In this document: positions 1 to 24,188 of the stretch, in pieces
Position numbering within the stretch: the first letter of the stretch is position 1
Layout: each line of letters begins with the position of its first letter
Source of the DNA: Styela clava
Taxonomy: Eukaryota
Length of the DNA: 64,000 nt
Direction of reading: 5' to 3'
Assembly (NCBI RefSeq): GCF_964204865.1
Contig: NC_135252.1
Coordinates: forward strand, 11,160,001-11,224,000
Position numbers and translations under genes: made by a program
Notes under the pieces: generated by a model
Database searches by the model: none
What the model saw: the letters and a program-made list of their open reading frames with translations, nothing else
What the model was told of the DNA's origin: nothing

Positions 1-226
1 TTTGAAACGAAGTAAAAACTCAAACCAGAAGTTTAAGTTGAATAGCCTTGGCCAAATAACAAGTTACAGCTAATTTAATTATTCAAGGAATTTTCCGTTT
101 AATGTATTAGTAGAAACATTGTCATGATCTTGAATAGTCGAACGATGAAACCAAGATGTATGTGCCAAGTGCCATAGTGCATATATGCATGATGTAATCA
201 ATTTACATAAAAATATATCATCATAC

Positions 227-842
227 TTATTAGGCAAAAAAACGGGCTTTCGATTATGAAGAACAACTTCTTCATATGTTCCATTGAAAGTTCCATTTGG
301 TACAGGTGCTTTTCTGTAATAAATTGCAATATAGTTAAGTATTGTTGGATACCACATACCAATAGTACATTTTAATATGCGACATGGCAGGCAGTAAGAT
401 AATAATTCTTGGATAGAATTAGGTCCCGTTACCAGTAGTTAAAAGAGAAAAGGGCGACTTTGGTCCTGTAAACACGAACACAACAACAACTTAAAAAAAT
501 TGTACTCATACTTTATGTTAGAAATAATGAAATTCAAAAAGAAAAATTTTTTTTCGATTTTGTAAAATATTTGATTGTTGGTAAGGAAGTAAAGAAATTA
601 ATAATACGTGACTACCCTTCTTTGATATATGTCTAATTGTCTACAACTTACTCAACATTTCGCTTGTCAGCCGGTTCGTTTGTTTTCTGTCTGTAAATGG
701 AATATTGTTGTGAGTTACTTGTTTGTTCGATGAAGGTAACATGATGTTTATTTTTTGTTTTACCTTATATAGAAAAAATAATATGCAATTCAGATGACAG
801 CAATTAAAACAAACACTCCTATGACCGCGCCGGCTATGGGAC
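227..842 (-). pseudogene. Partial duplicate (A') of the TM and proximal cytoplasmic exons of receptor A; premature TGA in the TM exon; probably continues beyond the window start
   Basis: Bases 1-864 closely match 3142-3999. Exons 842-764 (GPIAGAVIGVFVLIAVI*; TGA at 790-792 where A has GGA), 690-652 (RQKTNEPADKRNVE) and 313-227 (KAPVPNGTFNGTYEEVVLHNRKPVFLPN) all have AG/GT boundaries. Confidence 0.75.
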
Positions 843-3800
843 CTACAAATATAAAAAAAAAATCAACATGGTATATAAATCGACTGGCTTAGATTCCGTT
901 TGAACTTTAGTAGGTTGAACATTGGGTTTATAGAGTCTTAAAAGATAACAATTCTAGAATCACAATTAGGGTTTTGTTTTTTATCAATTCTAAAAAAAAC
1001 ATCGTGTTTTAAATCAAATATTTTCTGTATTATTTGTATTTTTTATTGAAATACCCCCTGCATCGCCGCGAAACTACGCCAAAACGTTGCATTCTGGCAG
1101 ATGCACACGCAGCCGGAATTATAATTTCAAAATATAAGTAAAATTTTATAATTTGACTTTCGCTTCTATTGCGTACATTTATCGCCATGCTTGTATCTCC
1201 ACCAAAGTCATAAGATTATACCCGGAATGTTTAGCCGAGATATCAGAGAGACGTTTTGAGTAAGAAAAATTATGAAAATTAGCTCACGAGCCCACTACAA
1301 AAGCAATTAGATCAAGTGCAGCCCTCCGGCAAAACGAGTGGGTTGCGATAATGAAGAATATGCTCATATCGGCGGTAATCTACTAATATAAACGACGAGA
1401 CACCCTAGCGGCTAGGGTCACCATATTTAAAAAAGCAAAATTCCGGACAGTGCATGCTATTTTCATGACCTCGTAGTAAAAAATATGCGCACGGTACGAA
1501 ATAACAATGTTCTGTATTATCAGATTCCGGACATTTGAGCGTTTTTTAAATTCTTTCCGGACGCAAAATTTGACCCTAAATTCTGGACGGTATGGCAACC
1601 CTACCCTAGCTTAGCCTATGCTAATTGTAGGAGTCCTCGGATGCAAAGACGCCACAACTAATCTGTTATGACGCCTAAATATGGATTTCGAGTTCATGTA
1701 TTGACATTTTCCTCATAAAATGAGGGCATTATTACGGCTAATACTGTCCGGTTAATTTATGCTTAGCATGCTTTGTTTTCAAGGTTAAAGTGATGGAGCT
1801 TTTCAAGGTTATACGAACTCATTTATTCGATCGCATTTTCGCGATTTCAATTTTGGCAAGATGGTTTCGTCGCAACAGGCTCGTTCAATTAATGGCTTAT
1901 CGGTTGCGTCTTACTGCGCCAACCACTGAACTACAGCTTGAGAAGGTGTACATAAGCCTCTATCGATATTTGTGGCGTTTTGAAAGATTTATTGCAAATA
2001 AGAAGCGCTTGGCAAGTTTTTACGTCCATTTTTCTTCAACCTATTTAATACAAAAAAATCAAATAGTACAGCCATTTTGAACAAAAAAGGCATAAAAAAC
2101 TTGATTTAAAACAATTGTTTTAAAACAATTCTTTTTGAACAAATCCCTAATCACAATGCTTTGCTCTAGAATGTATTATGAATATCCATTTAACCTATCA
2201 TATAGCCTTTAGGAATTTAAAAATATAACAGTGAATGATACTTTCAACACTAACGATAAAATGCGAGAGATGTACACAGTGTCACCAGATGTAATGTTTG
2301 CAAAATTTATAAAATTATGCAAATTCGAAGATAAAATATTTAAGGTTCCGTTTGTTGTTTTGTTTATCAAATTTTTTAAAACGTAATCCATCAAAAACAA
2401 TCATAACTTATACCGTTATCGGTCAGTAAATGCCTATATCTGAATTATTTATATATTGATGTTTGCCCACGCGTAGGATGCTTCTTTGTCCTCTGGTGAT
2501 GATAGTTCATCCGCTTCATCAGCTTGATTGTGAACGGGTTGTAAATTCAGCTGTTGGTAGTTTGAATCATCAGGTATTTTATTTTTGTCCAATTCCCTAA
2601 AATACAAACAAATACAGTTTAAGAATCGTCGTCCAACGTATCCTGGCGATCCCGAAACACGATGTTTCTCACTAAACGTGTTTACTGAAATTTGATTCAT
2701 CTTTAGTAGTTCTTTTCAAATATTTCTGTGAAATGGCTCTGACAATTTGTGTTTTGAATAAAAACCAACAACTAGATTATTTAAATTAAAATTATTATTT
2801 TCAATTGATTCGTCATATTCAAGCAAGAATATGTTTTGTAAAATTGTTGCTTTATCTTGATAAACTGGCTAAAACAATTAATTTAGTAAAAGCAAATTTT
2901 GTGCCTAACCAAATTAGTTGTTAAATTACTATAATGGCCATATTTTGGTAGACGTTAGCTCACGCATAAAACATATCTTCGCCCTTTGACTGTTCATTGT
3001 CAACAGAAAATCCAGCAACGTCTTCAGCAGGCAAGAAACCATCATCATCAATTATTGCGTATTCGCTTCAGAATAAAAATAATCTGTTTTGTAAACCATA
3101 TTTGTATGTTCTTCTCCATTTGAGATATTGGTTAAGTGTTATTTGAAACGAAGTAAAAACTCAAACCAGAAGTTTGAGTTACCTTGGCCAAATAACAAGC
3201 TACAGCTAATTTAATTATTTAAGGAATTTTCCGTTTAACGTATTAGTAGAAACATTAAAATTGTCATGATTTTGAATAGTCGAACGATGAAACCAAGATG
3301 TATGTGCCAAGTGCCATAGTGCATATATGCATGATGTAATCAATTTACATAAAAATATATAATCGTACTTATTAGGCAAAATAACGGGCTTTCGATTATC
3401 AAGAACAACTTCTTCATATGTTCCATTGAAAGTTCCATTTGGTACAGGTGCTTTTCTGTAATAAATTGCAATGTTCAGTATTGTTGGATACCACATACCA
3501 ATAATACATTTTAATATGCGACATGGCAGGCAGTAAGATGAGAATTCTTGGATATAATTAGGTCCCGTTACCAGTGGTTAAAAGAGAAAAGGGCGACTTT
3601 TTGTCCCGTAAACACGAACACAACAACAACTTATGAAAATTGTACTCATACTTTATGTTAGAAATAATGAAATTCAAAATGAATTTTTTTTTTCGATTTT
3701 GTATAATATTCAATTGTTGGTAATGAAGTAAAGATAATTAATAATACGTGACTACCCTTCTTTGATATACGTCAAATTGTCTACAACTTACTCAACTTTT

Positions 3801-6800
3801 CGCTTTTCAGCCGGTTCATTTGTTTTCTGTCTGTAAATGAAATATTGTTGTGAGTTACTTGTTAGTTCGAGGAAGGTATCATGATGTTTGTTTTTTGTTT
3901 TACCTTTTATAGAAAAAATAAAATGCAATTCCGATGACAGCAAGTAAAACAAACACTCCTACGACTGCGCCGGCTATGGGACCTACAAATATAAAAATCG
4001 GTAAAATATATCAAAGTACTATATTTTAATCAGTATTATTTATCGTTCAGGAGGACCAAAAATGAACAATAAAAGGTATGAAAATAGAATGGAAACAGTA
4101 GCGTCTATTTTAAAATATTTTTTTTTACATCTGCAAGTCTTGTAACCAAGTTTATAAAATGAAGCATTTGAGTTTTTATGAATATGGAATTACATTTGTC
4201 TGAAGACATATAATAAATACCAACTATTGATAAAAAGAATTCTGATAAAATTGGTTTGCTCTGTTAGTTTTCAGAATATCGTTTCGCAGAACTATAGTTC
4301 CACAGAAAGACACACTGTTTTCGTTTATAAGAGTTAGCATTTACTTGATTGTACTTGTATACCTGAATGACTGACTCCTACTGTGGCTTTTTCATTACCT
4401 ATTTGCTATCCGCACAGAGAGAAACAACGTTGTTTAAAAATGTCATCATATAGGTCTCGATTACAAATTCTTGTTTACAAGTTGATGTAGTAAAAATGTA
4501 TATTCATATTCAAATTACAACCATCTCGATCATGATTCATTCACTACTATTGCGCATTATTTTTGTTTTGTTCATTAGCTCTGCGTACTTGTATCCATGT
4601 GCATGCATGATATACCCGTTTGATAGTTACCGGCATTGCTGGGTGAATTTTCCTTTGTTGGTGATATTGACTGCGTTATTTCGCTCAAATTCGGCTTATC
4701 GTTGGTTGCTGTAACAACAACATAATATTGAAACGATTGTTATGTCCACTACGTGTCCAAACAGACATAAAATAAAAATGGGACCATTGATACTAAAGAT
4801 CAGCATTTTCCAAACTTTTTTGGCCACGGAATACTTACGCTTTTTATCTCGCCTCGCGGAACACCAAAAATGAAAAGGTAAAATTGATAAAGAAAAATGG
4901 TGTATTGCAGCGGTCCCAAAAAGTGCGCTACTACAGTACTGTTGCCAAATGCGCCGCGAAAACTAACAAAAGTGTATTCAACATACCTAAAATATGATTG
5001 AATATTTGTGTATGTATGTCTGAAGAAGTCTGACCTTTGTCAGACGAAACGTTACAGGAAGATATTTGTGTTAGTGTGTAGCAAGACTCTTGAATCACTT
5101 AGGATTGTTATCTCTACTCTTGCTACAGCATCCTTGCAATATATGTCTACGGATCCACCGGCACAAAAGAATAGAAGAAGGATAAGTAGTTAGTCTCGCA
5201 GAAACCAAATAATCAGCGGATATTTTGCATATTGCATTCAAATGTTTATTGCTCCTTACTTTAAATGCTGTGTATCTGGATCAATAAATTCATTTTAACT
5301 TTCTTTGTCGTTTACTTTCTATTACGTAGTACGTAATACGTAGTACGTACTAGTACTTTGTTCAATTTTGCGAGCTGGAGTTTGTTTATCTGCTGAATCG
5401 AGTTTAGCGAACATGAGTGATTTTTTCATCATTTTCAAGTAAAATCAGGTAGAGCTTGAGAAAGAAGAGTTGACCTTTTGCATTTGTCCGCTTTAGGCCG
5501 ACCGTGACGCGATATTGAACGGTCGCTAGTTGTGCGACAACTTCACGATCCCGAGATAGCCATGGCGACCAATTTGGTTGTAATTTTGGTCCATTTGGAA
5601 GATGCTCGGGGAACACTAGTGTTACGCGGAACACAGTTTGGGAAACGCTGCTATAGATTATAGAAGGTAAATAGTAGATTATAAAATTAGTGAATGATTG
5701 GCTTCTGGCTATGAAACTAGCAACTGTATCTAACATATTTAAGACAGTGCGTAAACTTGAAATCTTTTAATAAATGGGTGGAATTTATATAAGTGCTAAC
5801 ACTTTTAACATTTAAATTAATACCTGCGTTTACTGTCGTCTCGGATATTGTTATTGGTATTGACGATGTCATTGATTCATCTATGTTAGCTGTTATAGAT
5901 ATTGTTCCCGTTTTCTCTACAATTTGTTGAACAGTACAATTCGGTGAAAAAAAAATATCCGTTCGCATTTAATATGATACAAAAAATAAAAATGTCAGAC
6001 GTCAAGGCATTTTGTATTTGCTTTTGTCAAATAACAATTTATAGTCCTTGTTCGTGGAATTATATTTCTGTCATAAAATATATCAGAAAAAAAAGATAAT
6101 AGGTTTTATCACTATTATTTTCCACGTATTTAGTTTTGCATTCTCAGTATAAATTATGAGTATTTAATAAAGTTATATGTAAAATTATGAAACATGCGTA
6201 ATATGTGATAAGCATGAAGATCTTGTGACCAAATATACATTTATATGCTATTTTATATACAGAACTATACCAAATATTATCAAAAAAGCCATTAACGTTA
6301 TCACTGATGACAAGTGCGATAGCCAAGGTAAGTGGGCTATTGAAACAATTATTATATTAAATTGAATTTCTGGTCGAATTCTGTTACCTGTAGTCGGCGG
6401 AGAACTTTCTTTAGTTGTTTCAACAGGTATTGTCGTTGTTTCTCGTGTTGTACTTCCATCTGTTGTGTACAGTATGTGTTTTATATTAATTTACACTTAT
6501 AAATTTGATGGGTTCAATATGGAGTCCGAATAAAATTATTCAGTTTCTTAATTTGATTCATCAAATAAGAATACATTTTTATGCAAATTCATTCTGAGTT
6601 TCGCCCCTGCTTTAGATGAATTCAATACACACCAAAGTTATTATTATATAGATATTCAGAGTTTTATGATAATTTCATCAATTTAATATTAATTTTGGAT
6701 GAGTACTGTGTTTCCCCGAAAATAAGACCTACCTGAAAATAGGACCTAGCATGAATTTTAAAAATATTTTTAATATAAGCCTCCCCTTAAAATAAGAGAC

Positions 6801-7884
6801 CAAGTCGATAGCGCAAAATTGTTTTTGACCTAGTCGATAACAAGAAATATTTCCCACTCGTTTTGACGGATTAATAATCTATGTTGTTTAGTAGTTATTT
6901 TAAATAAAAACGTGGTATTATAAGTAAATGGATATCGGTTTTCATATTTTGTATATTTGAAAATCTCGTAATTCTTTACTTTGTAATTTTGTTTTTGATA
7001 AATGGAGTTAAGGACATCCCCCGAAAATAGGCCCTAGCGTTATTTTTCGAAAGAAAATTGAAATAAGCCACTGTCTTATTTTCGGGTAAACACAGTATAG
7101 ATACTACTTGTAATATATGTCGAATTTGCCGTAGATGTTGTTGGTGTTACCGAGTAGGCTGTTGATGGGTCTGTTGTAACTTGCTGTGTAGTTGTATCTG
7201 CAAAAAAATCCATTACATAGCAGCGACAGATTATAATAGTATCTATAAAGATTAATCAGAAAAATTGGTATGTGGTAATTTTATTAATTTTTGCTGATTG
7301 AATTGAAAAAGTGTACAACGATTTATAAATCATTGCACAAAATTCCACCGAATAAAGAAATGCAATATAAATTTATCAAATAATACACATTATCTATTAT
7401 CATATTATGCTCTGATCTTGTTAGAATATAAAACGATTAGTCAATGGTTAATTGGCTATAGAACCCGCTAAAAAGATTTTAAAAGATATTTTTTTCATTT
7501 TCTTCTATCAAAACTTGAACATAAGGCTATTTTATTATTATTGAAAGAACTGTACCTACAAACTCAGTCGTAGGAATGTAAAGATCAAATTGCACTTTTT
7601 TCTATATTCTATACATTCGCAAGATTTCATGATAGATGTGCTATATTGTACAAATGAGAGATCATATCAAAAACAATAGGTAAGTAAAATTAGATTTTAC
7701 AATATTGAACTTGTGGAGGAGATTGGAGAGATTGAAGATTAAGGAGGAAGAGACCAACAACATCACGTTCAATAACATTATCCAAGCATGATTTGAAAAA
7801 TAGAAGATTCCTACCTGCACTGATATCCGCATTTATCAGCCAGCCACGACTAATCAATACGAAGATCAAAGATACAACAAACAT
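843..7884 (-). CDS. Receptor A: Ig-less mucin-like type-I membrane protein with multi-tyrosine cytoplasmic tail (~309 aa, 11 exons)
   Basis: Manual splice model: 7884-7815 (signal MFVVSLIFVLISRGWLINADISA); 7197-7108, 6459-6388, 5916-5824, 4708-4631 (Thr/Ser-rich); 3982-3904 (TM GPIAGAVVGVFVLLAVIGIAFYFFYKR); 3830-3792; 3455-3369 (GTYEEV); 3065-2964 (NEYAII..MFYA); 2596-2471 (EL..SNYQQL..ASYA); 936-843 (..DLYTML..*). Phases are consistent and the total is 930 nt. The donor at 7107 is weak and the 3' end is uncertain. Confidence 0.7.
967..2149. mobile_element. Non-autonomous hAT-like DNA transposon in the last intron of gene A
   Basis: Imperfect TIRs TAGGGTTTTGTT / AACAAATCCCTA; exact 8-bp TSD ATCACAAT at 959-966 and 2150-2157. 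Confidence 0.8.
1413..1603. mobile_element. Short MITE nested inside the hAT-like element
   Basis: TIRs TAGGGTCACCATA / TATGGCAACCCTA with internal CCGGAC repeats; no clean TSD. Confidence 0.65.
4801..5650. mobile_element. Non-autonomous hAT-like element in a gene A intron
   Basis: TIRs CAGCATTTTCCAAACT / AGTTTGGGAAACGCTG; flanks CTAAAGAT / CTATAGAT (7 of 8 match). The paralogous gene B intron (~13153) has the empty site CTATAGA. Confidence 0.8.
5010..5208. repeat. Interspersed repeat, second copy at ~34290-34445
   Basis: Shared TGTATGTCTGAAGAA...ATATTTGTGTTAGTGTG...GCTACAGCATCCTTGCA...TTAGTCTCGCAGAAACCAAA. Confidence 0.75.
6706..7095. mobile_element. Tc1/mariner(pogo)-type MITE
   Basis: TIRs CTGTGTTTCCCCGAAAATAAGAC / GTCTTATTTTCGGGTAAACACAG flanked by TA on both sides, with internal GAAAATA(A/G)G sub-repeats. 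Confidence 0.8.
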
Positions 7885-8785: not shown

Positions 8786-9010
8786 TCGATGATAAATAAA
8801 GCACAGCCGGTGTATAGCAAAACGATGTAATTTACCGACGTTTCGTATTTCTATTCAGAATAACTTCATCAAGACATGATATGAAAGCACACTAACGTAT
8901 ATATAGAGAGAGAAAAGCAAGAAGAAAGAAAAAATTATCACGTCAAATTCGAAACGTCCGCAAATTACATCGTTTTGCTACACACCGGCTGTGCTTTATT
9001 TATCATCGAC
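8786..9010. repeat. ~65-bp-arm inverted repeat (foldback), possibly Penelope-like retroelement derived
   Basis: GTCGATGATAAATAAAGCACAGCCGGTGT..GCAAAACGATGTAATTT..GACGTTTCG and its reverse complement at ~8945-9010. Confidence 0.7.
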
Positions 9011-9379
9011 AATTTCTCTATTGTTGTATATGTTTCATTTAATGGGGAACAACTGCAACGTTTTGACTCCAACATTCCTCCACCATAACCATACGTGTTT
9101 TCATTTATTTATTCGAATAAAGACATCATAGTAAGCTAAAAGGTATATTAGGTGGAAGGCGAAGTTATATTGTGGCATAATATACAATCAATCAAGTTCA
9201 AACATTGTATCTTACTAGTATGATTCATAGCAATGTTCTTGAAATGTTGAAAATATCAAACAATAATATAAAAAAATATTAAACAGTTCTGTATAATATA
9301 TAGTATTTAATCTTCAAAATATTGTAGAAATCCATGTAAGATTTACAGTTTTCTTCATCTTGGCATACACAGTAGGTTT

Positions 9380-12300
9380 TCACTCGTCATTCTCAACGAA
9401 ACTATTAATGTCTCCACTTTTCTTTGATTTGTTTACCCTGGTGAAATGTTGATAAGATATCAGATAATTCATTTTAAGTATCTGTAGATTTTTTATAATA
9501 CCATTCTGAATATATAGGGATATTTGACTTGGCACCGAAGTGCCGATAAATATCAGATATTTATTATTCACTTCAAATCAGTATTTGTATTGAAGTTCAC
9601 TATCGTTCAGACGTTAATTTTCAAATGCTAAAAGTGTAGCAGTGTATAAAAATCTCTGAAAGTGACATTCCGCGATCACAGCAAAGAAAGCGATACTATT
9701 GACTATACATGTCTGGTTCGGCTCAAGATGACCATGTTATAATATGTCTATAATATAGATATCAATTTAATACTTACATGGTATATAAACCGACTGGCTT
9801 AGATTCCGTTTGAACTTCAGTAGGTTGAACATCGGGTTTATAAAGTCTTAAAAGAAAACAATTCCATTTTTTATCAAATATTTAGAATTTGCCAAACACT
9901 ATGCCCATGTATTTCCTTATATATATAAAGATCAGTGGTATTACAAACGATGTTTTTTGTGAAATTGATGAATACAGAGATAATGGATCATCTGTTTCCT
10001 CTTTCCCTGTTACCTTCTCGAGTAAGCGTTACAATAGGTTGACCTACTGGCAGAATTGTCTGAACAGACTTCCTGGCGGTGTCATGTACAGGTTATCAAG
10101 CTCTATATGCGGAAATTTCATGACGTAGTACGTACTACGCGTTGGTTGGTAGTTCAACGCAAATTGTGTTAAATATATGCAATTATTGCATCGTATGATA
10201 CAAGTACTAAAGCCTATATTCGTGCCTTGCAACTGATAAAAGTTTCTGTCCGCTCACAACGATTGAAAAATTAACAAGATACTCTGGCTGTCCATTTGTT
10301 ATGAAATGAAGACGGTTGAACTATATGTTGTGTACTTCAGGGTTTAGAAACTCGTTTATTTATTTTCTGTTATCACCTGTTATAAAGTACTTCGTCATCC
10401 GGATTTTCTGGCTCAGCTTGCGTATGAACGGATTGTAGATTCAACTGTTGATACTCTGTATCGTCGACGTTACTATTTTGATTCAATACTCTAAAACATA
10501 TTTAGGTTATGGGTTCGAAATAAAAATGAGTGTAGAATTTTAATTCTGAAAGCCAATGTTTTGCTTTTAAATGTGTTATGAAAATTCATTTACCTTATAC
10601 TATAACCTTCAAGAATCTGATAATATAATAAGTTATGAAGCAGAAGTAATTAGCCCTAATGATAAAGTATGAGAGACACACACAGTCTTACCGGCTATAA
10701 TATTGGCAAATTATATACAATTGTGCAATTGCAAAGATAAAATATTTAGGTTCCGTTTGTTGTTTTATTTATCACATTTTTTAAAAACACAACCTATCAA
10801 AAGCAATGTTTAAATAAACCGTTATCAATCAGTAATTGCCTATATCTGAATTATTTATATATAGATGTTTGCCCACGCGTATGATGCTTCTTTGTCCTCT
10901 GGTGATGATGGTTCATCCGCTTCATCAGCTTGATTGTGAACGGGTTGTAAATTCAGCTGTTGGTAGTTTGAATCATCAGGTATTTTATTTTTGTCCAATT
11001 CCCTAAAATGCAAATAAATACAGTTCAGGAAGTGTCCAAAGTATCCTGGCGATCCCGAAACACGATGTTTCTCACTAAACTTGTTTATGAAAATTGGATT
11101 CAACTTTAGTAGTTCTTTTCAAATATTTGTGTGCAATGGCTCCGAACAGTTTATGTTTTGAATGAAAACCACCAATTAGTTTATTTAAATTAAAATTATT
11201 CTTCAAATTATTATTTAAATAGATTAGTCATATTCAAGCAAGAATATGTTTCGTGAAATTGCGTTTGGGCAAAATTCCTATAAAACCGCACGGAAGTGAA
11301 ATTAAAATATGCATCACTGTTTTAGTGCTTCATCTCGATATACTGGCTAAAAACAATTGAGTAAAAGCAATTTTTTTGTACATAACCAAATCAGTTGGTA
11401 AATTACTATAATGGTCATATTTTGGTAGACGTTAGCTCACGCATAGAACATATCCTCGTCCTTTGACTGTTCATTGTCAACAGAAAATCCAGCAACGTCT
11501 CCAGCAGGCACGTAACCATTATCATCAATTGAGGCATATTCGCTTTAGAATAAAAATAATTTATGTTTGTAAAATCATATTTGTATGCTATATTTAAAGT
11601 ATTTATGAATCGCTATTTGAAACGAAGTAAAAACTCAAACCAGAAGTTTAGGTGGAATTACGTCGGCCAAATAAGTTAGGCTAATTTAATTATAGGAATT
11701 TGTCGTTTGATGTACTATATTATTGAAAACGATGAAACCAAAACGTATATGCCAATACTATATTATATACTAACCAAAAAGACCTAATTTGAATTATTCA
11801 CAGAAATATATATCATCATACTTGTTGGTCAACACAACGGGCCTTCGATTATCAAGAACAACTTCCTCATATGGGTCATTGAAATTTCCATTCGGTACAG
11901 GTGCTTTTCTGTAAACATTAACAATAAAAATAAATTAGAATTAGGAATTCCAGCACTCTATAACAATACATTCTCAATATCCATTAGGACAGAGTTTAGA
12001 ACACAAATACACAAATATATGGACAAGAAGTTTTGTGTATAGGCTACAACCTAGTAAACAGTGATTAAAAAAGCCGACTTAGGAAAACGGAACATAGCAT
12101 TCCTTCAAATTTAAATAGAGATATTCATTTTGATTTTGTAAAATATTTGATTACTGGTTATGAAGTAAAGATAATTAATAGTATGCTACTACCATTCTTT
12201 AATATATGTCACTTGTCAACAACTTACTCGACATGTCGCTTGTCAGCCGGTTTGTTTGTTTTCTGCCTGCAAATGAAATATTGTTGTAAATTACTTGTTA

Positions 12301-14726
12301 TTTTGTGGATTGTATCGTGATCTTTATTTTTTTTTTACCTTTTATAGAAAAAATAAAATACTATTCCGATGACAGCAATTAAAACAAACACTCCAACGAC
12401 TGCGCCGGCTATGGGACCTACAAATAAAAATAAAAATAAAATCGTTAAATATATGGTAGTAATGATTTTAATCGGTATTATTTATCGTTCAGAAGGACCA
12501 AAATGAATAAAAAAGTTTCCATTCAAAAATATTGCTTTCTACACATGCATGCTTTGAGTCTCATGATCACGTTTATAAAGTGAATTATCTGAGTTTTTAT
12601 GAATACGCAATTACATTTTTCTAAAGTCACATCATAAACAACAACTACTATTAGAAAGAATTGTTGTAAAATTGGATTGCACTATTAGTTTTTGAAATAC
12701 CATTTGCAGACTTATACAAAAATACGCATTGTTTGCCAATATAAGGGTCAGCTATGTATTCTCAACTTTAGCATTTTCATTACATATTTGCTATCTACTC
12801 AGAAAGAAACAACGTTGTTTAAAAATTTCATCATATAGGTCTCGATTCCAAATTCTTGTTCAAAAGGTGATGTAGTAAAAATGTATATTCATATTCAAAT
12901 TACAACCATCTCAATCATGATTCATTCACTGCTATTGCACAACATTTTTCTATTAACTCTACATATTTGTATACATGTACATGCATGATATTCTTGTTTA
13001 CTAATTACCGGCATTATTGGGTGAATTTCCCATAGTTGATGGTATTGTCTGCGTTGTTTTGCCCAGATCGTTGGTTGCTGTGGAAATTCATGAACTGTAA
13101 ATTGGCTCATTATATAAATAAAAATGAAAAATAAAAAAATGGAACCTTTGATACTATAGAAAGTAAATTCTAGATTATGAAATTAGTAAATAATTGTGGC
13201 TTATAGATGCATGTTGTGAAACTAGCAATTGTATCTGACATGTTTATGACACTGCGTAAACTTCACAAAATGGATATGTTTTTGCTAACACTTCTCACAT
13301 TTAAATTAATACCTTCGTTTACTGTCGTCCCAGATGTTGTTATTGGTATTGACCATTTACTTGTTTCATATGTGTTAGTTGTTATAGATATTGTTCCCGT
13401 TTTATCTACAATTTATTGAACATTGGAAATGTATTGATTCAGTGGAAAAATTATTTGTTTGCATTTAATATGGTACAAAAAATAAAAATATCAAACGTCA
13501 AGGCATTTCGTGTTTGCTTTTGTCAAATAACATTTTATAGTCCCGACTCCTGGTTTGTGGAATTATATTTCTGTCATAGAATATATATATCAGTAAAAAA
13601 GATATTAAATTATATCACTATTAATTTGCAAATAATTAATTTTATATTGTCTATATAAATCATATGTGTTCATACCGCTGGTGTGTTCTGTTGACGGAGA
13701 AGATGTTGGATTACACTCCGGTACCGTTGATGTACTGGGTGTACTTGATGAAGCTGTTTGTTTGAATATAAAAAGAAGTTGTTAAAGAAAGGTTCTCGAT
13801 AAAATAGTCATGTAAAATATAGCGTTTGACCTGGCTATGTTAGCGTAGTATGTTGAAAATTTCAGCTGAAACCCTATCCCTATCACCTATCGTGGGGTAT
13901 AATAAAATAGGTAGGCAAGGCACAAGCGAGATACTTTCTTCAATTCTTTTTGAAAAGTGGCACTTTAAGTATCAGTGACATTCAGGAATTTGTTCGGAAA
14001 GAAAATGTGAAAACGTATCATGACAAGATATTATAGGCTTTAGATTCCCTTAATTATTATTTCTGTTTTTAATTTTTACAATCTTACGTTTAAATATAAG
14101 TTTCAATTGCCTAATCTAAGTCATTTGATGGTTTTCGAGCTCTGAGATAAAAATAAAAAAAATCCTAATATTCAATCAAAGTACAAAATATGTTAAATTA
14201 ACTGAGAATTAGACATAAATTGTTTGTTTTGATGAAACGTGATTTTCATATTTAAAGAATTCACACCAGACTTACCTATTACGCATACTAGTAAATCTCT
14301 CTCTCCATAGTTTGAAGATGTATTGACTTTACATGAATATTCACCGGAATCTGTCAATGCTACATGCTTAGGAAAATATATTCCCCCGTTGGTTTGATAA
14401 ACAGAACAGGACTGACTTTTGCTAACTTCGACATTATCTTTCCACCAACTTATTGATGATGTTGATGAGGAATATGAACACCTTATGGAATTGGAATTTG
14501 TATCGAAGTTGTCGGTATCCAATTTGAAATAGTCGGTATTCGGATTAAAAGTAATATCTGTTATAAGATAAAACGAATGTTGTTGATCACTATAGCACAG
14601 AAGACACATAGGTCAAAATATTTGCAACTTACCGCCACTGATATCATCTGAATATATTTCCGAAAACAAATGAAAACCAATTAATAAGATGATTATGTTC
14701 AATGAATTATTGGCGTACTTCAACAT
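9380..14726 (-). CDS. Receptor B: signal peptide - single Ig domain - Ser/Thr stalk - TM - long tail with ITIM/ITSM-like tyrosine motifs (~429 aa, 13 exons)
   Basis: Exons 14726-14633 (signal); 14557-14276 (Ig: C..SWWK..DSGEYSC); 13753-13676, 13405-13313, 13077-13009 (stalk); 12417-12339 (TM GPIAGAVVGVFVLIAVIGIVFYFFYKR); 12266-12228, 11908-11822, 11542-11441, 11002-10877, 10490-10377, 9846-9778, 9437-9380 (tail). All introns are GT-AG and the 1290 nt are in frame. Motifs: DPYEEV, NEYASI, MFYAEL, SNYQQL, ASYAVL, TEYQQL, VLYNRL, GLYTMV. Confidence 0.85.
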
Positions 14727-15813
14727 TTGTTTGTCGCTTGTTCACTCGTCCTTCGCTATTCTTCACCTTGTATACATTCTATGCTTCATTTGAATATTAT
14801 CACCAAAACATCTAGATTTGATCACTATTAAAAGATTGAGATGCAAAATCAGATCAGATATTAAAAAAGCATTGTCAATTTTAATAAAATTATGATCTGA
14901 ATTCTGAACATGCGCACACTAAATATTGAACGAAAAACTTTTTTGTTTTATCGGCTCATCCTGAAAATTACTAAATCAGCTATGCCAAACCAAAAATCTG
15001 AATCACTTAGTGCAATTAATCGGATGCCAATCATATTCCAGCACTCTTGCCTCCGTCTGTTATTAACAAACTTTATATTCTGCACAGCTAATGGACATTT
15101 GATCTATATTTACCTACACGAAGATTAACTTTACCCATCCAACTAATAACATTTATTTTACAAATACATCTATTGCAAGGCATAGGCAGAGTGCATTTTT
15201 ATCTAATTTGGCTCCAAGTAAGTATTCAATGATTCATTAAGAAACTATCTTTAGTTTTAGACCATTTAAGAATCAAACGCTAAAATAACACAAACAAGCT
15301 AAATAAACTGTGTGAATGTGGTATGCTGCAATTAAAATAGCAAACGTTTACTGGCATTTTCAATACCTCCTTTTTTCGTTTATAGTGAAAGTGCAAATAA
15401 TTCACTGATCTTAATATTCAAATCCCATTCTACACGATTTGTTATTGCTTGATTCAGGCTAAAACTGAATATTTAACCGATGCCAAACTTCATTCATTAC
15501 TATATAAATAAAAGCACTCAAGTAGTTTCTGTACATCGAATTTCACTAAACTCGAATTAAAATTCTGTTGGCGCCTTTTTGGTATGCTTTTAATTTCATG
15601 AAAACATTCTCATAGAATTCAGTTCCCAGCCCTAACCTAATCTAAAAAATCACTGAGATCACACAACCGCTGAGATCGTCCCACTAAACCATTCTGTTTA
15701 TCACAACCTGTAATGCATTTTTTTAATCCTATAATAAGGTACTTTTTGGATCGGACTAAAACATTACATATAGTCTAACCTTAATTAATACCATTGCTTG
15801 GCAAACAAATTTA

Positions 15814-15923
15814 GGTACTCCTGAAGTATGCGCACCAAGATGTGGCATAACCTGAACCCTAACCTGGTACACAACCTGATTTCAGGTTGTGCGCCATCTT
15901 GGTGCGCATATTTCAGGAGGTCA
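15814..15923. mobile_element. 110-bp palindromic MITE (Merlin-like termini)
   Basis: Arms CTCCTGAAGTATGCGCACCAAGATG / CATCTTGGTGCGCATATTTCAGGAG; starts GGTAC; flanked by direct repeat CAAATTTA. Confidence 0.85.
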
Positions 15924-16013
15924 CAAATTTATTACAAAAGTGGTATAAATATGAGCAGAGCACTAGACCGATCATAGCTCCTAACTAGATCTGGGATCCC
16001 AATAACCTATATG

Positions 16014-16642
16014 TAGGGCTGGGAATGGTTAACCGGTTAATAGGTTAACCGATTTTAAATGGTTAACGGTTACGATTTATTTTAACCTTTTATTTTAACT
16101 GACATCTCAGGTACAAATCATCTTTATAATGTACATTTTTTTCAAAAATGATTACGTCATCGCAAATTTATTTCAGTGGCGTTTAATTCAGAAAAATATC
16201 ACTAACTGTATTGGTAAGGACCGAATAAATGTGAAAAATAATTCAAAATTGCTAAATATGAAAATTTGACAATGATAAATTCAGAATCACTTTTCAGTCG
16301 AAATATATTGTTCACGATTTTATTGAAAAATCGTATATTCAATGTCATCCAACAATTGCGCAGTTGATGCTGTTTTTCCTCATGATATCTCAGAGTAGAA
16401 CTTGCACGCCCGAAGAACGCTGTATATCTCTTGCAGCAGAGCGATCATGAAACTATCTCCATTCGTGAATAATTTTGAGCGATACCGGGACAAGATCACG
16501 CGAAATTGTTTTGTAACCATTGTGACGTAACAAGCTAAAATCATAAATTATTACGTCAAACGTCACGCTGCGGTTTATCGGTCAACCGGTTAATTTCACC
16601 CTGTTGACGGTTAAAGTGTTTCCCCCGAAATTCCCAGACCTA
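16014..16642. mobile_element. hAT-like non-autonomous element
   Basis: TIRs TAGGGCTGGGAAT / ATTCCCAGACCTA with subterminal GGTTAACCG-type repeats at both ends; TSD not evident. Confidence 0.65.
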
Positions 16643-19600
16643 ATGTACAGACAACATACTAGCCTTTTAAGATGAGACATCCCCCTATCCTTTTAGTAAT
16701 ACACTTGCACTCAATACTCCACTACCTAACAATTTTAAGAATATCTGCTATAGACGTTTGAGATTACTATTGCTCAGAAACAATTTTTCACGCTTGTACA
16801 GTGATAGGTGTAGTATTTAGACACGTTTTCGATGTGATGAGGCGTACTACAGGTATGACTAATCAGCTTGCGCGCAATTACATTACCCTCATTTGGTCAA
16901 AAAGGGAAGCATCATATTTTGTTATCTCCGCTATGTATTGTTTAAACAGCCAATATTTGACTTTGTGCCTCATATAGATTTTTGCTTACAGAGGGTAACT
17001 ACTTTCATTTTGTTGCCTGTTGACGAAACATGATAAGATGAATTTGTGTTGTGTCGTATATAAGCGTATAATAAAAGTTGATTTTCATTCTCTTTATTGC
17101 ATATTTACTTGTACAAAGAGAACATATGTTCAATAAAACTGTTCTAGCTAAAATATTCATCAATAGAATCAGAGTCTTTTCAAACTATGAATTGAACTTG
17201 TCTCATGTACCAGCTTCCAGAACGAATTTTTCAATTCAAATTTTAGGACATAATTTCCAAGAGAATAGGTTTGATAATTATGTCGACGGAGGGGGAAATC
17301 GATAAGATGGCTTACCGTAGCTTTTCGGCCGACTAACAGAACATGCCGCCGATAGGAGTTGTTGACTATTTTTCTATATAATACATGCCCTACAACTTTC
17401 AAATGCATAGACGTTTGCTAAAAAGTAAAAAGAAATAAATCAAAAGCTGACAACTAAAGCAGCCTGAGCCGACAAGAAGTTCAACATCTTTTTCATATTA
17501 GTTCTGCACGCATTGCAATGCAGCGCGAAAATCAAAATGAAGAGGACAATAATCAGGCAACTATAAGAAATATGAACTGATAAAGGATTAGTGGTATTTT
17601 GTGTAATACAGTCACTTACTAAATTACGAAATAAAATGAACACAATACTTTACTGAATAAAAAACGTGTCGCGGGGACAGTCTGTTTGTCTAATAGCCTA
17701 CATAGGCCAACACAGAATTAGTATTCAAAACTCATTGCAAATCCTGGCTCGTTACTTTTTCAAATCAAAATTTTTCTGTTAAAAACAACAATTTTACAAA
17801 TTAATTTTATTATGCAATTATTTAACGCATTTTTGTACGAAACATGACAAAACAACAAAAGTAATTAAACCGTGTATATGGTGGATACACCATACCTGAA
17901 GTTACATATATATATTTAATATCCTTTTGCATTTTTTGTCATACCTTATTCAGTACAATTTCCGTATTTCATTTTTGAAATCACGTCTAAAACTTGAGAT
18001 TTTTTAATATATAAAATTGAAACTAGAAGCGATATTCTACAGTTTTACACCAGTGCTATTCCGCGATCTATCGATGCTTATTTGCTGGCTCTTATAAATC
18101 TCTCAGTTTGAAAAACAGAGTTTCTTGGATAAATGTTTTTATTGAATATGTTTCGAAACTGAAAAAGAAAGGCAAACAAATGTGATGAAATAGGATATTC
18201 AGTATTGTTCAGAGTTGCAAATACATGAGCAGTAAAATTATTAATTTCTCTTCGTTTAATATTTGCTATTAAAATCCGTTGTTGTTGTTTTCCTCTCTTT
18301 TTAGCTATTTGCTTGAATGTATGGTTTATTGTAATATAATAAAGTTCATTCCTTGCCCTATAAATCACAAATTCAATTGTGCTTTTTTTTTTATCTAAGC
18401 ACGTGCTCTTTTGAACTTATCGTTATAGGTGATATTGGTACAAAAGCACCTTTACATAACGAACAAATGTCTGCTAATAATTGCACTCAAAAACAGGAAT
18501 GGCTGAATTAAGAATAAATCACAAAAGTGAAAGTAAACTGTCACGGTTGAAAAGACAAAAATAACAAACTTTATTTGCCATAACAAAATTCAAATCACCC
18601 AAAATATACACATATATATCTACATAGCATATGCCATGTTATCATTAAAAATTTATGGCCCGTATTAAAGATTGCAATTATCTATCGGAAAATTCTGTTC
18701 ATTGAGTACAATTATACTATCAAAATAGGCACAGCTGCAATGGCCAAAATTCAAGGCAAGTTGTGCATCTGATATGCTAAATGATGATTATTAATTGAGA
18801 AATTTCTATATTAGACCTTAAAAAACAGTTAAAATCTTCAATCTTATATTAATTATTAGAAATATTATCAAAGTTGAAATATGTGATTATTTGCGGCAGC
18901 CTTTTTCAAATTATGGAGGTAGGTAGAATTAAAAAAACATCACCTCAGATTTATACAGTAAAAGTTACATTATTTTTCAAATGAACTTGGTTATATTACG
19001 ATACTTATGCGATATCGAAGGAAGTACCACAATATAGAAAATGCGACAGTGTAAGTATTTTACTAGTTTTGAACGTGTTGTTCAACTCTTATGCGATATT
19101 CTGTCAGCCCTTATTGTAATTGGAACAATCTCTCTGCATGCAACAAAATTACCTGGATTGTGGTATTTGATCAAATATATTTCATAAGTATATTAAATTT
19201 CATGTTTACTGTAATGAATTATAGTAAAATATACGGCGTCAGATACACCTACATTATATATATTTTAATTTTTTCGTATATTGAAAACTGATACAAGAAC
19301 AATACAGAAAATATAATTTTATTGATTGCACAAAATTGTATAGTTTCTTTCTTTAAATCATCTGAACTAGGTTGGATCATCTGCAAAAAAATATAACAAT
19401 GATTTATTTCTAAACTATTTTTGAAGTTTTGGGCAATGAATTAGTAACTTAACCGAAAACTTGTCTGAATATAATATTCAAACTGGTAATGAGGATTTCA
19501 TGGTTTACAAGTCAGTTGAGAGGTTTGCTAAGAAAGCAATGGTGATGCAATCAATTAGGTCAACACTAAATTATATTAACACAATTTAATACTACCAATT

Positions 19601-20014
19601 TGAAACTAAATTCTAATCTGATGGAAAAAAATAATAATTATGTAGGAAAAATATCTTTTTATTAGATTTGATTCAAAACAATTCTTTCAATTAACATTAT
19701 GTTATGCCCTGGACTGTTATTGCGCAGGACTTAAATTAAGATGTTAATTTAGTTATTTTTAATGATATGGTATTTTATTAGAATTCAGCATCATTTAAAT
19801 GCTACTAAATGATTGTAGTCTCTAATTGAGATGATCGAATTTAATCCCACATGTCAAATTACATGCTTATCTTTATATCAGTGGTCAAGTATAACATTGG
19901 AGTTTGGTTGGTAATAATATTAGAATTTGACTTCTACAAATTTAGTGTAACAAGCTAAAATATTTACCTCATGAACTCCATCATATGTCAGTATGATAAT
20001 ATACTTTGTATTTT

Positions 20015-23000
20015 CTAAGCGTTTTCATACTCATAAATAATTTTCTCCTGGTTTTTGTTCAAGCTGCGAAAACATAAACGTAACATAGTAAAGAACGGTT
20101 TCGAAACAACCAAATTAATTGATCTTTTTTCTTACTTTTCATAATACGGTGGCCGTTCGGAGATATTTGGATTGTGTGTAATATATGCACTAGGTTCATA
20201 CCCGTCTTCTTCGATGACATTTGAATATGTTCTAGAATGATTTTGGTTGAAAATTAGTTCACTATAAAATTATATTTGACGTCAAATGTTTTTGATAATG
20301 TAGAAGATATCTTATTCAGACACCTGCAAGATATCTTATTCAGACATCTTGTTTGCTTGTTATGATTTAGTCTAGAAAATTATTGTGTTTATCAAACTGC
20401 AGTTCGCGAAAATGCCGTTTGAGTGTGCATCCACGATTGAGATACATGTTTTCAAGTGGTTTAGATTTTGTTCCTAAAAATAATTAATGTATAAATTTTA
20501 CCTATTGCCCTCTGAGGTATTATTGGACGCAGTTGGTGGATTAGACGAAATCTCGTGATAATGTAGGGATTCCTCAAGCACAACATCCGATTCAGGAACA
20601 TTTTTCGGTGATCTATATTGAAATTAAATAATTAGATTCAAAATTGAACTGACTTTAGCATTATTATTTTGTATAAACTACACGCCTTATTAACAGTTTC
20701 AGTGTGATTAACTAAACTAAACAGCGATTGAAAGAACATTTCGATTTTTTGTTCTAACATCATCAAAATTCAGAAATAAAAGATACATACTCTTAACATT
20801 GTATCTCTGGAGTAAAATTATATAACATTTGTTTTTGCTATTGTAACTTATTTGATTGCTGGCAATGAATTAAAAATAAACAACTGTTTGTTGCTATTAT
20901 CTTTCATGCCTAATCATCAATAACTAACTCACACGACGTTCCGTTCCGTGGGTTCGTTTGTTTTCCTTCATGACAATAAAATATTATTGTGAAATAAAAG
21001 TTACTTACAGAAATGTACCGTGATCTAAATTTTTTGTTTTACCTTTTATGGAAATAAAATACAATTCCGATGATGGCAATCAACACCACTACTCCTACGG
21101 CTGCGCCTGCTATGAGGCCTGCAGATATAAAAGTATATTGAATATTTGAAGAACAATATTTTAAATGGTATTACTTACCAAGCAGAAAGCAGCGGTATCA
21201 AACATTTAAAGCACGACATGTTAATATCACGAATGGTCACAAAAATTGCTGAAAACATCGCCCTTGGTTATTGTGCGATTCTTTTACAACCATCTCGGCC
21301 GAGGTGATTTTCTAACATTCAATATTATTTCACACCATTTTTTATCAGCTCCACATACATGAACATATATGCATATACACACATTCGGTAATTACCGGTA
21401 TTGTTGGGTAAATTTTCTGTTGTTGATTTTATTTTCTGCGTTGTTTCGCTCAGATTCGTCTTGCTTGTTTCTGTGGAAAATAAAAATCTCTGATTGTCTA
21501 AATATATATATATATATACGACGAATGGAAAATGGGACCATCGATTAATTAAAAATGCTTCTCGAATGCCTGTTTTGTATTATTTTTACAATTTTACCCT
21601 TGGAAGAAACCAAATAACATCGACCTAAATGCAGTATATTATTTTAATTTTAAATTGTTATGAATATATTCACCAAGAAGTGAGAACGGCGAGTCTTAGT
21701 TTATCACTTATCGATCTCGATAAGTATGTTGATAGGTATTTGTCTGTCTGTTTGTTTGTCTGTTAGATGCACGCGATATCTCACAAAAGCAAAGTTGGAT
21801 CTACTCCAAATTTTGCATGTGCATTCATCATATCCCGGACCAGAAGTCTATTGATTTTGGAAGATTTATGTCATATAATTAGCAGTTATTCATTAATTAG
21901 TGATGGAACACACGATGTCGCTAAGGAGTGAGAGTGGATTAATCGAAACTGCAGTTTCTGTTTTGGGGGATCCCCTAACTTTCGATCGATAAGTTTTCGG
22001 TCTCCGACCGATATTCTCGTTTTATAATTGGCTCATTAATGATTACTGCAAAACTTGGAATTGTACTCGTACAAGTTTTTCCAACGCGTAGACAAGGGCT
22101 CTTCAACCTGGAGGTCTCGACCGATCGGGGGGCCACAAAAGGAATCAATGGGAGTCGCGGTGATATATTTGTTGCACTAACTCATGTTGAAAAAAAATTT
22201 CCATCAAGTTTTAAAGATTTGTAACCTGTACTGAGAGGCACCAAGACATGATTAGATTTTTTGTGCGAAAATAAATAAGCAAGCCTGTCTCATCAAAAGC
22301 ATTGTCAGTTTTTTCAATATTTTCTGTATTATTAAATTTCACTTCATTTTTAACTTTGTTCCTGGCGGTCGCGAAAAATTTGGCCGCGCCGAGTGGATCG
22401 TGATGAAAAAAGTTTGAAAACACTGGCTTAGACAAAAATCTCTTTTAACAATCGGTTGATATTTATGTCCTGACAGACACAATTGGAATTCGAATACATA
22501 CCTGCATTCACTGTCGTTATGGTTATTGACGATCTTGTCGTTTCATTCACGTCTTTGAAAGGAGTAGATGTTGGATTACAAGCTGGGACCGTGGATGAAG
22601 ACGGTGTACTTGCTGAAGCTGTATGTTTGCATGCAAGAAAACAATTCAATTCGCTAAAGAATATTCTCAGGTCAATAGTTAGTATTGGAATATGGCGTTG
22701 GACTTGGCCATGTAGGCGTCGTATGTTTACGGGTCGAAATCCAATCCACCTCATCAGAATATGATAAATAGGGTAGACAATACGGATCCGAAAAGCTTCC
22801 AACCTTTCTTAAAATGCTGCTCTTTGCATATCAGTGACGCCTAACCAGATAGAATGGATTAAAATATTAACATAACATTATATTAAATATATCGATAAGA
22901 AGATAAAATTAGACACCTGCTATTAGTTCAATGAAATTAGAGCAAAAACTATATATATATATATATATATAGATGATTAGTTAACCGGAAGAACTCATAT

Positions 23001-23815
23001 TTCCCAATACAAAACAAAATGTATCTGAGGATGGCCTCCAGCGTTTTTATACAAACTCTGATAAATATATATTACTGATGACGTTGAAAATATTTTAGAA
23101 TTTACCTATAATGCATACTAATAAATTTTTCTCTCCAAGGTTAGAAGATGCATTGACTTTACATGAATAATCACCGGAATCTGTCAGTGCTACATGTCCA
23201 GGAAAATATATTCTCCCGTTGACTTGATAAGCAGAATCGAACTGACGTCCGCTAACTTCGACACTGCCTTTCCACCAGCTTATTGAGGTTGATGAGGAAT
23301 ATGAACATATTACGGAATTGTGGTTTATATCGAAGTTGTCGATATCCAACTCGAGATAGTCGCTATCCGGATGGAATAGAATATCTGATTATAAACATGT
23401 TGAGTTGCAATTTAGCACAGATAATTTCAAAATTTTGTTATCATGTTTCAACAAACTTCATTCTACGTGGGAGATATTTTTGCAATGTTGGTTTGGGGCT
23501 CAGAATTGTGTGTAAGCCAATACAAAGAATAAAACTCATCATATGTAAGGAACTCACATTAAGTACGTTACCGATCTTAATAAAGCACATAAGATGAATT
23601 GTCCCTCATATTTTTTTATATTTCAGTTAGTCACTTTTACATTCTGAGCGAAACGGTTTAATTTTGATAAAATAAAGGAAAAGAATCCATGGGGACATTC
23701 ATGTAAATTGTGTACAGTACTTGCCTCCACTTATATCAGCGCAATTTGTATCCGAATGAGTAAAAATGAAATATAAGATAACAGCACATGAACCTATGTT
23801 CTTTTGCTTCCACAT
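20015..23815 (-). CDS. Receptor C: signal peptide - single Ig domain - Ser/Thr stalk - TM - tail with one ITIM-like and three YxN motifs (~308 aa, 9 coding exons)
   Basis: Exons 23815-23725 (signal; GC donor GCAAGT); 23384-23106 (Ig: C..SWWK..DSGDYSC); 22618-22502; 21470-21396; 21118-21043 (TM GLIAGAAVGVVVLIAIIGIVFYFHKR); 20965-20933; 20612-20502 (LHYHEI); 20231-20136 (TYSNV, GYEPS, PYYE); 20063-20015 (NL..IIYEYENA*). 927 nt in frame. Possible 3'UTR exon from 19380 with AATAAA near 19320. Confidence 0.85.
21670..22021. mobile_element. Helentron-associated (HINE/DINE-1-like) interspersed element
   Basis: Internal (TGTC/TGTT)n microsatellite, TTATCGATC / GATCGATAA subterminal inverted repeat, 3' hairpin TCGGTCTCCGACCGA followed by a T-run. 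Confidence 0.55.
22093..22425. mobile_element. Degenerate hAT-like MITE
   Basis: Ends CAAGGGCTCTTCAACCT / AGTTTGAAAACACTG with subterminal GGTCGCG-like motifs. Confidence 0.5.
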
Positions 23816-24188
23816 TTAGGATGCTCCCTAGAATATACTTAAGTTTTTATCTTTAGATTATACCCAACTAATTTGCAAGCTTTGAAAAAATTTAAGAACA
23901 AGTGAGTCAAAGTAAGAAAATATGTTGGCATAAGTTTAAACATAAAATGTTTCCTTCACAAATTTTGTTCATTTCAACTTGGCGGCAAGTCCTTTCAATG
24001 CCACACAGTTTGATTCGACAGGTAATAATATATTTGATGATATAGTTACAGAACATACATATTATAAGGCGTTTAATCGAAAATATAGTTGAACATTTCA
24101 TAAAATTTTATTTTATTTTAACAACATCACACTCTTTTTTTAATTCTGCTTAACATACATATTCTGTAACATTACTCGCTAGTTCATT

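Follow-up and report, generated by a model that had tools for sequence, protein, structure and literature searches.

Tandem genes for immunoglobulin and mucin-stalk receptors with tyrosine-motif tails in the solitary tunicate Styela clava

A stretch of 64,000 nucleotides from Styela clava (assembly GCF_964204865.1, contig NC_135252.1, positions 11,160,001 to 11,224,000; denoted here as the window, position 1 being its first letter) harbors a cluster of genes that are confirmed to be genuine and to encode single-pass type I surface receptors. Six-frame motif scans of the window place all cluster genes on the minus strand of this contig (C3). Three of them, A, B and C, and a partial copy termed A' lie in the window, and the family extends past its start with the genes Z and Y (Table 1). 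RefSeq labels the family members "uncharacterized protein". The evidence supports a description as type I receptors with an immunoglobulin (Ig) domain and/or a mucin stalk and with tails rich in YxxL/I/V motifs, including matches to the consensus of the ITIM (immunoreceptor tyrosine-based inhibitory motif) and motifs resembling the ITAM (immunoreceptor tyrosine-based activation motif). Three same-strand genes and a partial copy had been predicted from the letters alone; motif scans and self-BLAST recovered all of them, along with the proposed common signal exon end, (A/D)DIS(G/A), which reads ADISG in C (23726-23740), DDISG in B (14634-14648) and ADISA in A (7816-7830), and the common G-x-I-A-G-A membrane exons (at 21102, 12401, 3966 and 826, the copy at 826 containing an in-frame TGA). 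An Ig domain had been assigned to these genes as well, which holds for B and C and not for A, where no Ig exon was found. The units are paralogous: in the self-BLAST, 1-857 matches 3142-3997 at 93% identity, 2154-6154 matches 10554-13660 at 78-85%, and the Ig exon of B (14272-14566) matches that of C (23102-23394) at 83.5%, while the introns flanking these two Ig exons can no longer be aligned.

Direct transcript and splicing data are available for gene B, and the transcripts of A, A' and C rest on RefSeq models and on the conservation of their splice sites. The B transcripts derive from four small runs of three studies, labelled "RNA? (a guess)", in which 8-18% of the words from the stretch of gene B are present. 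Contigs from these RNA-like runs, aligned to 9000-14900, yielded 13 joints, all of them CT..AC on the plus strand, that is GT..AG on the minus strand, with zero intron depth. They define a gene of 13 exons with GT-AG introns and one alternative joint, which skips a 93-nt stalk exon at 13405-13313 (joints 13077-13313 and 13405-13676 versus 13077-13676). These intron-free contigs cannot derive from a retrocopy, since the genome contains only three copies of the family Ig exon, each within an intron-bearing gene. The open frame comprises 429 aa, or 398 aa without the cassette, and is identical to the RefSeq isoforms X1 and X2, so that two independent lines, RNA contigs and RefSeq, agree on the gene B model. 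The spliced transcripts called for by the original prediction are thus confirmed for B. Judged from open reading frames, the B tail would come out too short: the splice donor of exon 10 precedes the stop that such a reading shows, and the frame runs on through three further coding exons to 9383.

The B protein starts with a signal peptide of 31 aa, followed by an Ig domain of 94 aa that is encoded by a single phase 1-1 exon and shows a Cys-Cys span of 49 residues. C26, W37/W38 and the D69-S-G-x-Y-x-C75 signature are invariant across the Ig domains of B, C and Z. The isolated B exon scores over the Pfam cut-offs of Ig_2 (29.3 vs 27), I-set (24.2 vs 23.7) and ig (22.2 vs 21.8), and the Ig exons of C (19.5) and Z (21.8) remain slightly under them. 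The V-set model reaches only 14.9 against a cut-off of 26, the domain having two to four Cys. In the PDB, the three paralogous Ig exons, taken together as a profile, match Ig domains from titin, obscurin, Robo1, IL-1R and Fc-gamma-RIII. Judged by these matches, the family Ig domain is I-set/C2-like and not V-set. The B stalk is encoded by three phase-1 exons and consists of 81 aa with 53% Ser+Thr+Pro; the Cys of its VPECNPT motif is also kept in C. The stalks of A, B, C and Z are probably O-glycosylated. The membrane helices of A, B, C and Y show a GxxxGxxxG motif, that of Z is different, and no charged residue was found in the family helices. Pfam matches of these regions to podoplanin, to the insulin-receptor and ErbB membrane segments and to TMEM154 are sub-threshold; they reflect composition or a membrane helix and not membership.

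Gene C repeats the layout of B, with signal peptide, Ig domain, stalk, membrane helix and tail. Its membrane exon is related to that of B, and its tail is unrelated to the B tail. Intron 1 of C is of the GC-AG type (donor GGAG/GCAAGT, window 23719-23726), where B has GT, and the RefSeq model uses the GC. The C tail encompasses 70 aa with one canonical ITIM (LHYHEI), followed 22 residues later by YSNV.

The tails of A and B are composed of symmetric phase-2 exon cassettes. That of B is acidic and 198 aa long, with seven exons, each starting in phase 2, and eight of its ten Tyr lie in YxxL/I/V motifs (binomial P = 2e-5; 0/20,000 shuffles). In the A tail the motif accounts for 4/5 Tyr (P = 0.003). 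B harbors two ITAM-like pairs, YAEL-x10-YQQL and YAVL-x10-YQQL; that there are two is due to exons 10 and 11 being duplicates of each other. In each pair, the codon of the first Tyr closes the preceding exon as its last full codon, and only splicing therefore completes the motif. The ITIM consensus [S/I/V/L]-x-Y-x-x-[I/V/L] is matched by SNYQQL and VLYNRL in B, by SNYQQL in A and by LHYHEI in C, and YEEV in the B tail resembles the preferred site of Src-family SH2 domains. Tyr and the +3 residue of all eight YxxL/I/V motifs of B are retained in its other allele, despite 19 changes in the tail, and also in A', which differs at 35 of 191 residues (18%); the chance of sparing all 16 key positions is ~0.04. 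A Tyr outside these motifs (YVPA) is Phe in A and A'. In one RNA run (X4), an in-frame 9-nt deletion at 10904-10920 in B exon 10, probably an allelic indel, drops one ADE of the ADEADE linker between Tyr motifs.

Gene A is composed of parts of two relatives. Z shares 81-91% identity with it in the signal exon and the first two stalk exons, the last two stalk exons of A are B-like, and the switch lies between 6154 and 6252. The 666-nt interval that holds the Ig exon in Z is reduced to 39 nt in A. Owing to this Z-like 5' part, the shortened interval and the match to B from 6154 downward, A is regarded as a Z-5'/B-3' mosaic minus the symmetric Ig exon. The RefSeq model of A reads through the donor of the exon homologous to B exon 10 (E10) to a stop at 2452. 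Between this exon and an E12-like exon, where A is without an E11 homologue, lies a dispersed repeat. Since A' starts directly after the E12-like exon and repeats the membrane exon and E7, it is interpreted as an internal tandem duplication of the segment from membrane exon to E12. This partial copy had been taken to end at 227; its tail exons E9'-E13' (L004) continue to ~2.3 kb before the window start, with all frames and GT/AG sites intact.

Beyond the window, Z has a signal exon almost identical to that of A, an A-like mucin stalk, a membrane helix unlike that of its relatives, and an acidic tail. Its Ig domain is 42% identical to that of B, and an older annotation lists a further form of 223 aa (P0017), which has no membrane segment. 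The membrane exon of Y has the same splice sites as that of B and is accompanied by E8/E9/E10-like Tyr cassettes (EYATI, YADI, YEDI, YENV); no family Ig or signal exon was found within 12 kb upstream.

Table 1. Features of the receptor cluster, with positions in the window unless a label precedes them
Feature	Position	Strand	Basis or identifier
Gene A, 285 aa		minus	RefSeq; LOC144421113, P0153
A signal exon ending ADISA	7816..7884	minus	91% nt identical to Z signal exon
A four Ser/Thr stalk exons	4629..7198; in-frame 7198-7109, 6457-6389, 5917-5825, 4709-4629	minus	
A membrane exon (3980-3903) with the tail homologues of B E7-E10	2452..3983	minus	
A homologues of E7-E10	3829-3791, 3454-3371, 3064-2963, 2595-2452	minus	
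Dispersed repeat	960..1200		at least 37 further copies on many contigs, 84-91% identity
E12-like exon, abutting the duplication junction ~857-866	866..951	minus	94% identical to B 9864-9776
A': membrane exon with in-frame TGA 855-754, E7' 705-643, E8' 319-217	217..855	minus	
Gene B, isoforms X1 and X2		minus	RefSeq; LOC120341785, X1 P0155, X2 P0152
B exon 1: 5' untranslated region (UTR), ATG at 14726, signal peptide ending DDISG	14633..14850	minus	RNA joints
B exon 2: Ig domain, phase 1-1, Cys...Trp...DSGxYxC	14276..14557	minus	RNA joints, Pfam
B exon 3: stalk with conserved Cys (VPECNPT)	13676..13753	minus	RNA joints
B exon 4: 93-nt stalk cassette, in X1, skipped in X2	13313..13405	minus	RNA joints
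B exon 5: stalk	13009..13077	minus	RNA joints
B exon 6: membrane helix GPIAGAVVG... (GxxxGxxxG)	12339..12417	minus	RNA joints
B exons 7-13: cytoplasmic tail, 198 aa	9383..12266	minus	RNA joints
B exons 7-10	12266-12228, 11908-11822, 11542-11441, 11002-10877	minus	
B exons 11-13	10490-10377, 9846-9778, 9437 to stop after 9383	minus	
B 3' UTR, with more between-run variants than the coding exons	9069..9382	minus	RNA contigs
Gene C, 282 aa		minus	RefSeq; LOC144420837, P0014
C exon 1: ATG at 23815, signal peptide ending ADISG	23725..23815	minus	RefSeq P0014
C Ig exon, phase 1-1	23106..23384	minus	70% aa / 83% nt identical to B Ig exon
C two Ser/Thr stalk exons	21393..22620; in-frame 22619-22503, 21471-21394; +/-2 nt	minus	P0014 mapping
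C membrane exon GLIAGAAVG..., GxxxGxxxG	21041..21117	minus	
C two tail exons	20132..20612; in-frame 20611-20501, 20230-20135	minus	P0014 mapping
Gene Z, 317 aa, outside the window	L004:768-4830, 5.2-9.1 kb before window start	minus	RefSeq; LOC120341788, P0151
Gene Y	L018:7317-8610 (G000:C3:11091317-11092610), ~68 kb before window		GPIAGAIVG membrane exon

Genome-wide, the GxxxGxxxG membrane exon is kept in five copies, all on contig C3, and the tail cassettes together with the membrane exon were found nowhere else in the 377-Mb genome. Several further elements were recorded around the cluster. The window DNA is AT-rich and eukaryotic. A palindromic repeat of ~105 nt, resembling a miniature inverted-repeat transposable element, occurs in both orientations at 15814-15922, 29451-29559, 50860-50955 and 53278-53353. 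Short repeats with 92-100% identity (24188-24397, 25627-25728, 60269-60798 and, inverted, 4713-4760) sit upstream of C, at the far end of the window and in the intron just upstream of the A stalk exon 4709-4629. A membrane exon with GSIAGA on the plus strand (43838-43855; GSIAGATILIGLLVYW) is part of another gene nearby; a Tyr tail like that of the family was not seen downstream of it. Near Y, a second membrane-like exon is located at L018:9731-9901. At 12.9-16.9 kb before the window start (L017/L016), the minus strand holds five more Ig-like exons with the pattern C...W(Y/H)K...Y(E/T)C; they are 20-30% identical to the B Ig and probably belong to a multi-Ig gene.

Comparison of paralogs yielded dN/dS values of 0.70 for the Ig exons of B and C (dS 0.25), 0.23 for those of B and Z (dS saturated) and 0.38 for the tails of A and B. 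The last value supports purifying selection on the tails as the likely regime, and none of the Ig or tail comparisons gave a dN/dS sign of positive selection. The "fast-evolving" character attributed to the family is consequently true in moderation only. When the B allele of the current assembly is compared with that of the independent older one, 0/31 residues differ in the signal peptide, 0/94 in the Ig domain, 1/49 in the stalk, 3/26 in the membrane segment and 19/198 in the tail. The RNA contigs likewise show 0-2 differences in the 282-nt B Ig exon, and a 223-nt part of the 3' UTR has as many as 8, the sample for Ig polymorphism being a small one of two assemblies and RNA contigs from three further studies. 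In the older allele (P0013 compared with P0152), exon 8 is identical to exon 8 of A, and further changes in the tail agree with A as well. This points to gene conversion involving A and B, or to chimerism of the older assembly.

These values bear on the proposal, akin to the allorecognition candidate of the original prediction, that the cluster encodes polymorphic allorecognition determinants, either labels or receptors, comparable to fuhc/FF/FcoR of Botryllus or Alr of Hydractinia. Such a role would fit a tandem, lineage-specific cluster of the Ig superfamily (IgSF) with ITIM/ITAM-like tails that includes mosaic genes and internal duplication. For Botryllus FcoR, recombination between genes and the swapping of motifs through splicing are described (PMC12582321), and the congener Styela plicata is documented to reject allografts, as judged from the reference list of PMC5465252. 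However, the Ig domain expected to vary is identical in the two assemblies while the tail is not, it differs far less than the 3' UTR among RNA contigs, and its dN/dS between B and C is not above 1. Because the Ig is monomorphic, the family tiny, with only three such exons in the genome, and S. clava solitary, the allorecognition idea is weakened to the point of being very improbable.

It might also be argued that the cluster consists of decaying, lineage-specific duplicates of no functional importance, with the Tyr motifs as a by-product of internal cassette duplication. The TGA in the A' membrane exon, the repeat element where A is without E11, the non-significant motif count of C and the origin of E10 and E11 as duplicates, which makes the two motif pairs non-independent, point in this direction. 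Set against these are the transcription of B and its correct, and alternative, splicing in four runs, the intact frames and splice sites of B and likewise of the RefSeq models of C, A and Z, tail dN/dS values of 0.3-0.4, and the persistence of 83% identity between the B and C Ig exons, whose flanking introns have become unalignable. Decay is hardly credible as an account of the whole family.

Homologues outside S. clava were absent from database-wide protein searches, weak generic Ig matches and a few chance matches aside. The queries were B (word-indexed search), the B tail alone, a profile of five family proteins and a profile of the Ig exons; the latter, compared with 1.84 billion representative proteins, gave three single-domain full-length matches, all from S. 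clava, the rest being giant multi-Ig proteins. Within these searches the family is restricted so far to S. clava and has no named ortholog, as had been predicted.

This restriction is relevant to another reading, in which the proteins serve as non-immune receptors for adhesion or tissue signalling at epithelial, neural or gamete contacts, with a layout like that of MPZL1/PZR, podoplanin and CD43. An I-set/C2 Ig domain is typical of adhesion molecules, the stalk and membrane segment show the sub-threshold similarity to podoplanin, gene A is purely mucin-like, the B ectodomain is monomorphic, and nothing links the family genes to hemocytes. Most adhesion proteins of the IgSF have orthologs across ascidians, however, and none was found for this family; furthermore, the dense ITIM/ITAM-type arrangement and the similar heads but different tails of B and C are typical of immunoreceptor pairs. 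An adhesion role is a serious, though less likely, rival.

Among systems of known function, the closest in organization is FcoR of Botryllus schlosseri. Both belong to Styelidae and consist of clustered type I IgSF genes, FcoR tails carry ITIM, hemITAM and 'core' YxxI/L/V motifs (PMC12582321) as the S. clava tails also do, tail exons are reshuffled by recombination and splicing in both, and for neither are homologues known beyond close relatives. The same source gives an Ig-Sushi-Ig-Ig ectodomain for FcoR, compared with one Ig or none on a mucin stalk in S. clava, and describes FcoR genes as adjoining three-pass FF partners and as highly polymorphic in some cases; no such partner was seen in the S. 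clava cluster, whose Ig is monomorphic in the sample. Pfam detected no Sushi domain in the S. clava family, which accordingly lacks the ectodomain that defines FcoR and is not assigned to it. No sequence similarity between the two was detected, and FcoR sequences may be absent from the searched databases. A further solitary ascidian, Halocynthia roretzi, has a hemocyte membrane glycoprotein recognised by the antibody A74, with two ITAMs in its tail and a part in phagocytosis and hemocyte aggregation (as cited in PMC5465252). The likeness of this antigen, from a stolidobranch, to B is one of description only. With a size of ~160 kDa it is much larger than B. The Halocynthia hemocyte self-marker HrSMLP1 is DD3-3-like and unrelated to the S. 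clava family.

Vertebrate receptors with a similar arrangement of parts are likewise analogues. The original prediction had compared the genes with the TIM/CD300/PILR type; the layout agrees, and the Ig type does not. TIM proteins show the same order of Ig, mucin, membrane helix and Tyr tail, but their Ig is a V-set domain with six Cys and a ligand-binding cleft, in contrast to the I-set/C2-like domain with its 49-residue span in S. clava, and membership is ruled out. BTLA, LAIR-1, G6b-B and PILR also combine one Ig, a stalk and one membrane helix; their tails are short, with 2-3 Tyr in ITIM, immunoreceptor tyrosine-based switch motif (ITSM) or YxN sites, and they show no detectable homology to the family. 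Look-alikes proposed by a language model (pIgR-like, V-set, BTLA with 0.88, K1 of Kaposi's sarcoma-associated herpesvirus, CEACAM1-like) scored at most 0.90 and are leads only. Fc-gamma-RIIA and Fc-gamma-RIIB have related Ig ectodomains, RIIA with an ITAM-like pair separated by a 12-residue spacer and RIIB, its partner, with a single ITIM. B and C resemble them in their related heads, in a signalling motif within their own tails, and in the lack of a charged membrane residue or adaptor; the spacer has 10 residues in B, and C is the partner with the single ITIM. Lacking a charged membrane helix, B and C are unlike adaptor-dependent pairs. Fc-gamma-RIIA/IIB have two C2 Ig domains and no mucin stalk and share no sequence relationship with B/C beyond the Ig fold, and the ten Tyr of the B tail far exceed one ITAM as in Fc-gamma-RIIA.

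Given the architecture and the conserved, over-represented Tyr motifs, the best reading is that the family comprises single-pass type I surface receptors that signal via phosphotyrosine and SH2 proteins and was expanded by tandem duplication and exon shuffling, a view held with moderate confidence. Several observations weigh against it. Transcript evidence is confined to gene B. The C tail, predicted to be as motif-rich as the others, has no statistical YxxL/I/V excess (2/6 Tyr, P = 0.15), and the Z tail has no Tyr at all. The B spacers of 10 residues do not conform to the canonical ITAM spacing (6-8) and fall inside the broad 6-12 definition only, and YQQL doubles as 'ITIM' and as second ITAM half, so that the signal may be of either sign. 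In whole-protein scans all Ig matches stay under the Pfam cut-offs, and an AlphaFold2 model of the Ig exon, built on a 3-sequence alignment, has a mean pLDDT (predicted local distance difference test) of 53, which makes it unusable, and predicts nothing but strands. As a whole, the original interpretation is partly supported.

If the family signals via phosphotyrosine, binding of a ligand by the ectodomain, or its clustering, would start the signal, perhaps in dimers that may be held together by the GxxxGxxxG motif of the membrane helix and the conserved stalk Cys. Src-type kinases would then phosphorylate the tail Tyr, which could dock SH2 proteins. The two YxxL-x10-YxxL pairs of gene B would suit a Syk-type kinase with tandem SH2 domains, and SHP-type phosphatases would fit the sites with ITIM consensus, which are SNYQQL and VLYNRL for B and LHYHEI for C. 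Homologues of Src, Syk, SHP-1, SHIP, Grb2 and Crk are reported as expressed in Botryllus, a member of the same ascidian family (PMC12582321). Dimerisation, phosphorylation, the SH2 partners, the pairing of B with C and an immune role are all putative and derived from sequence features.

With Ig domains that are 70% identical and tails that are unrelated, B and C look like a pair with opposite output reading one ligand class. It is conceivable, although rather unlikely, that they constitute an activating/inhibitory pair evolved independently in a solitary tunicate, in which Z, or its secreted form, would act as a decoy that does not signal and A would be a variant lacking the Ig. If so, a near-identical, monomorphic Ig head would be coupled to ITAM-like pairs of its own tail in B and to a single ITIM in C, and hemocytes would integrate opposing signals of one ligand without adaptor chains, like natural killer cells or Fc-gamma-RIIA/IIB. 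The symmetric phase-2 tail cassettes would in that case allow the signal to be retuned via exon duplication or skipping.

Clustered IgSF receptors with ITIM/ITAM tails evolved repeatedly in animals, and S. clava provides a second, apparently unrelated case within one ascidian family. Among tunicates, Botryllus FF/FcoR has been studied best and is linked to allorecognition in colonies, whereas S. clava is solitary, and its family appears monomorphic in the ectodomain and variable in the tail. It illustrates how readily such receptors are built from an Ig exon, mucin cassettes and phase-2 Tyr cassettes. Four RefSeq loci labelled "uncharacterized" gain names and functional hypotheses. With five genes, among them one clear pair of similar heads and different tails and one natural Ig-less mosaic, the family may serve as a compact test system for whether ITIM/ITAM-like motifs engage Syk and SHP homologues in tunicates.

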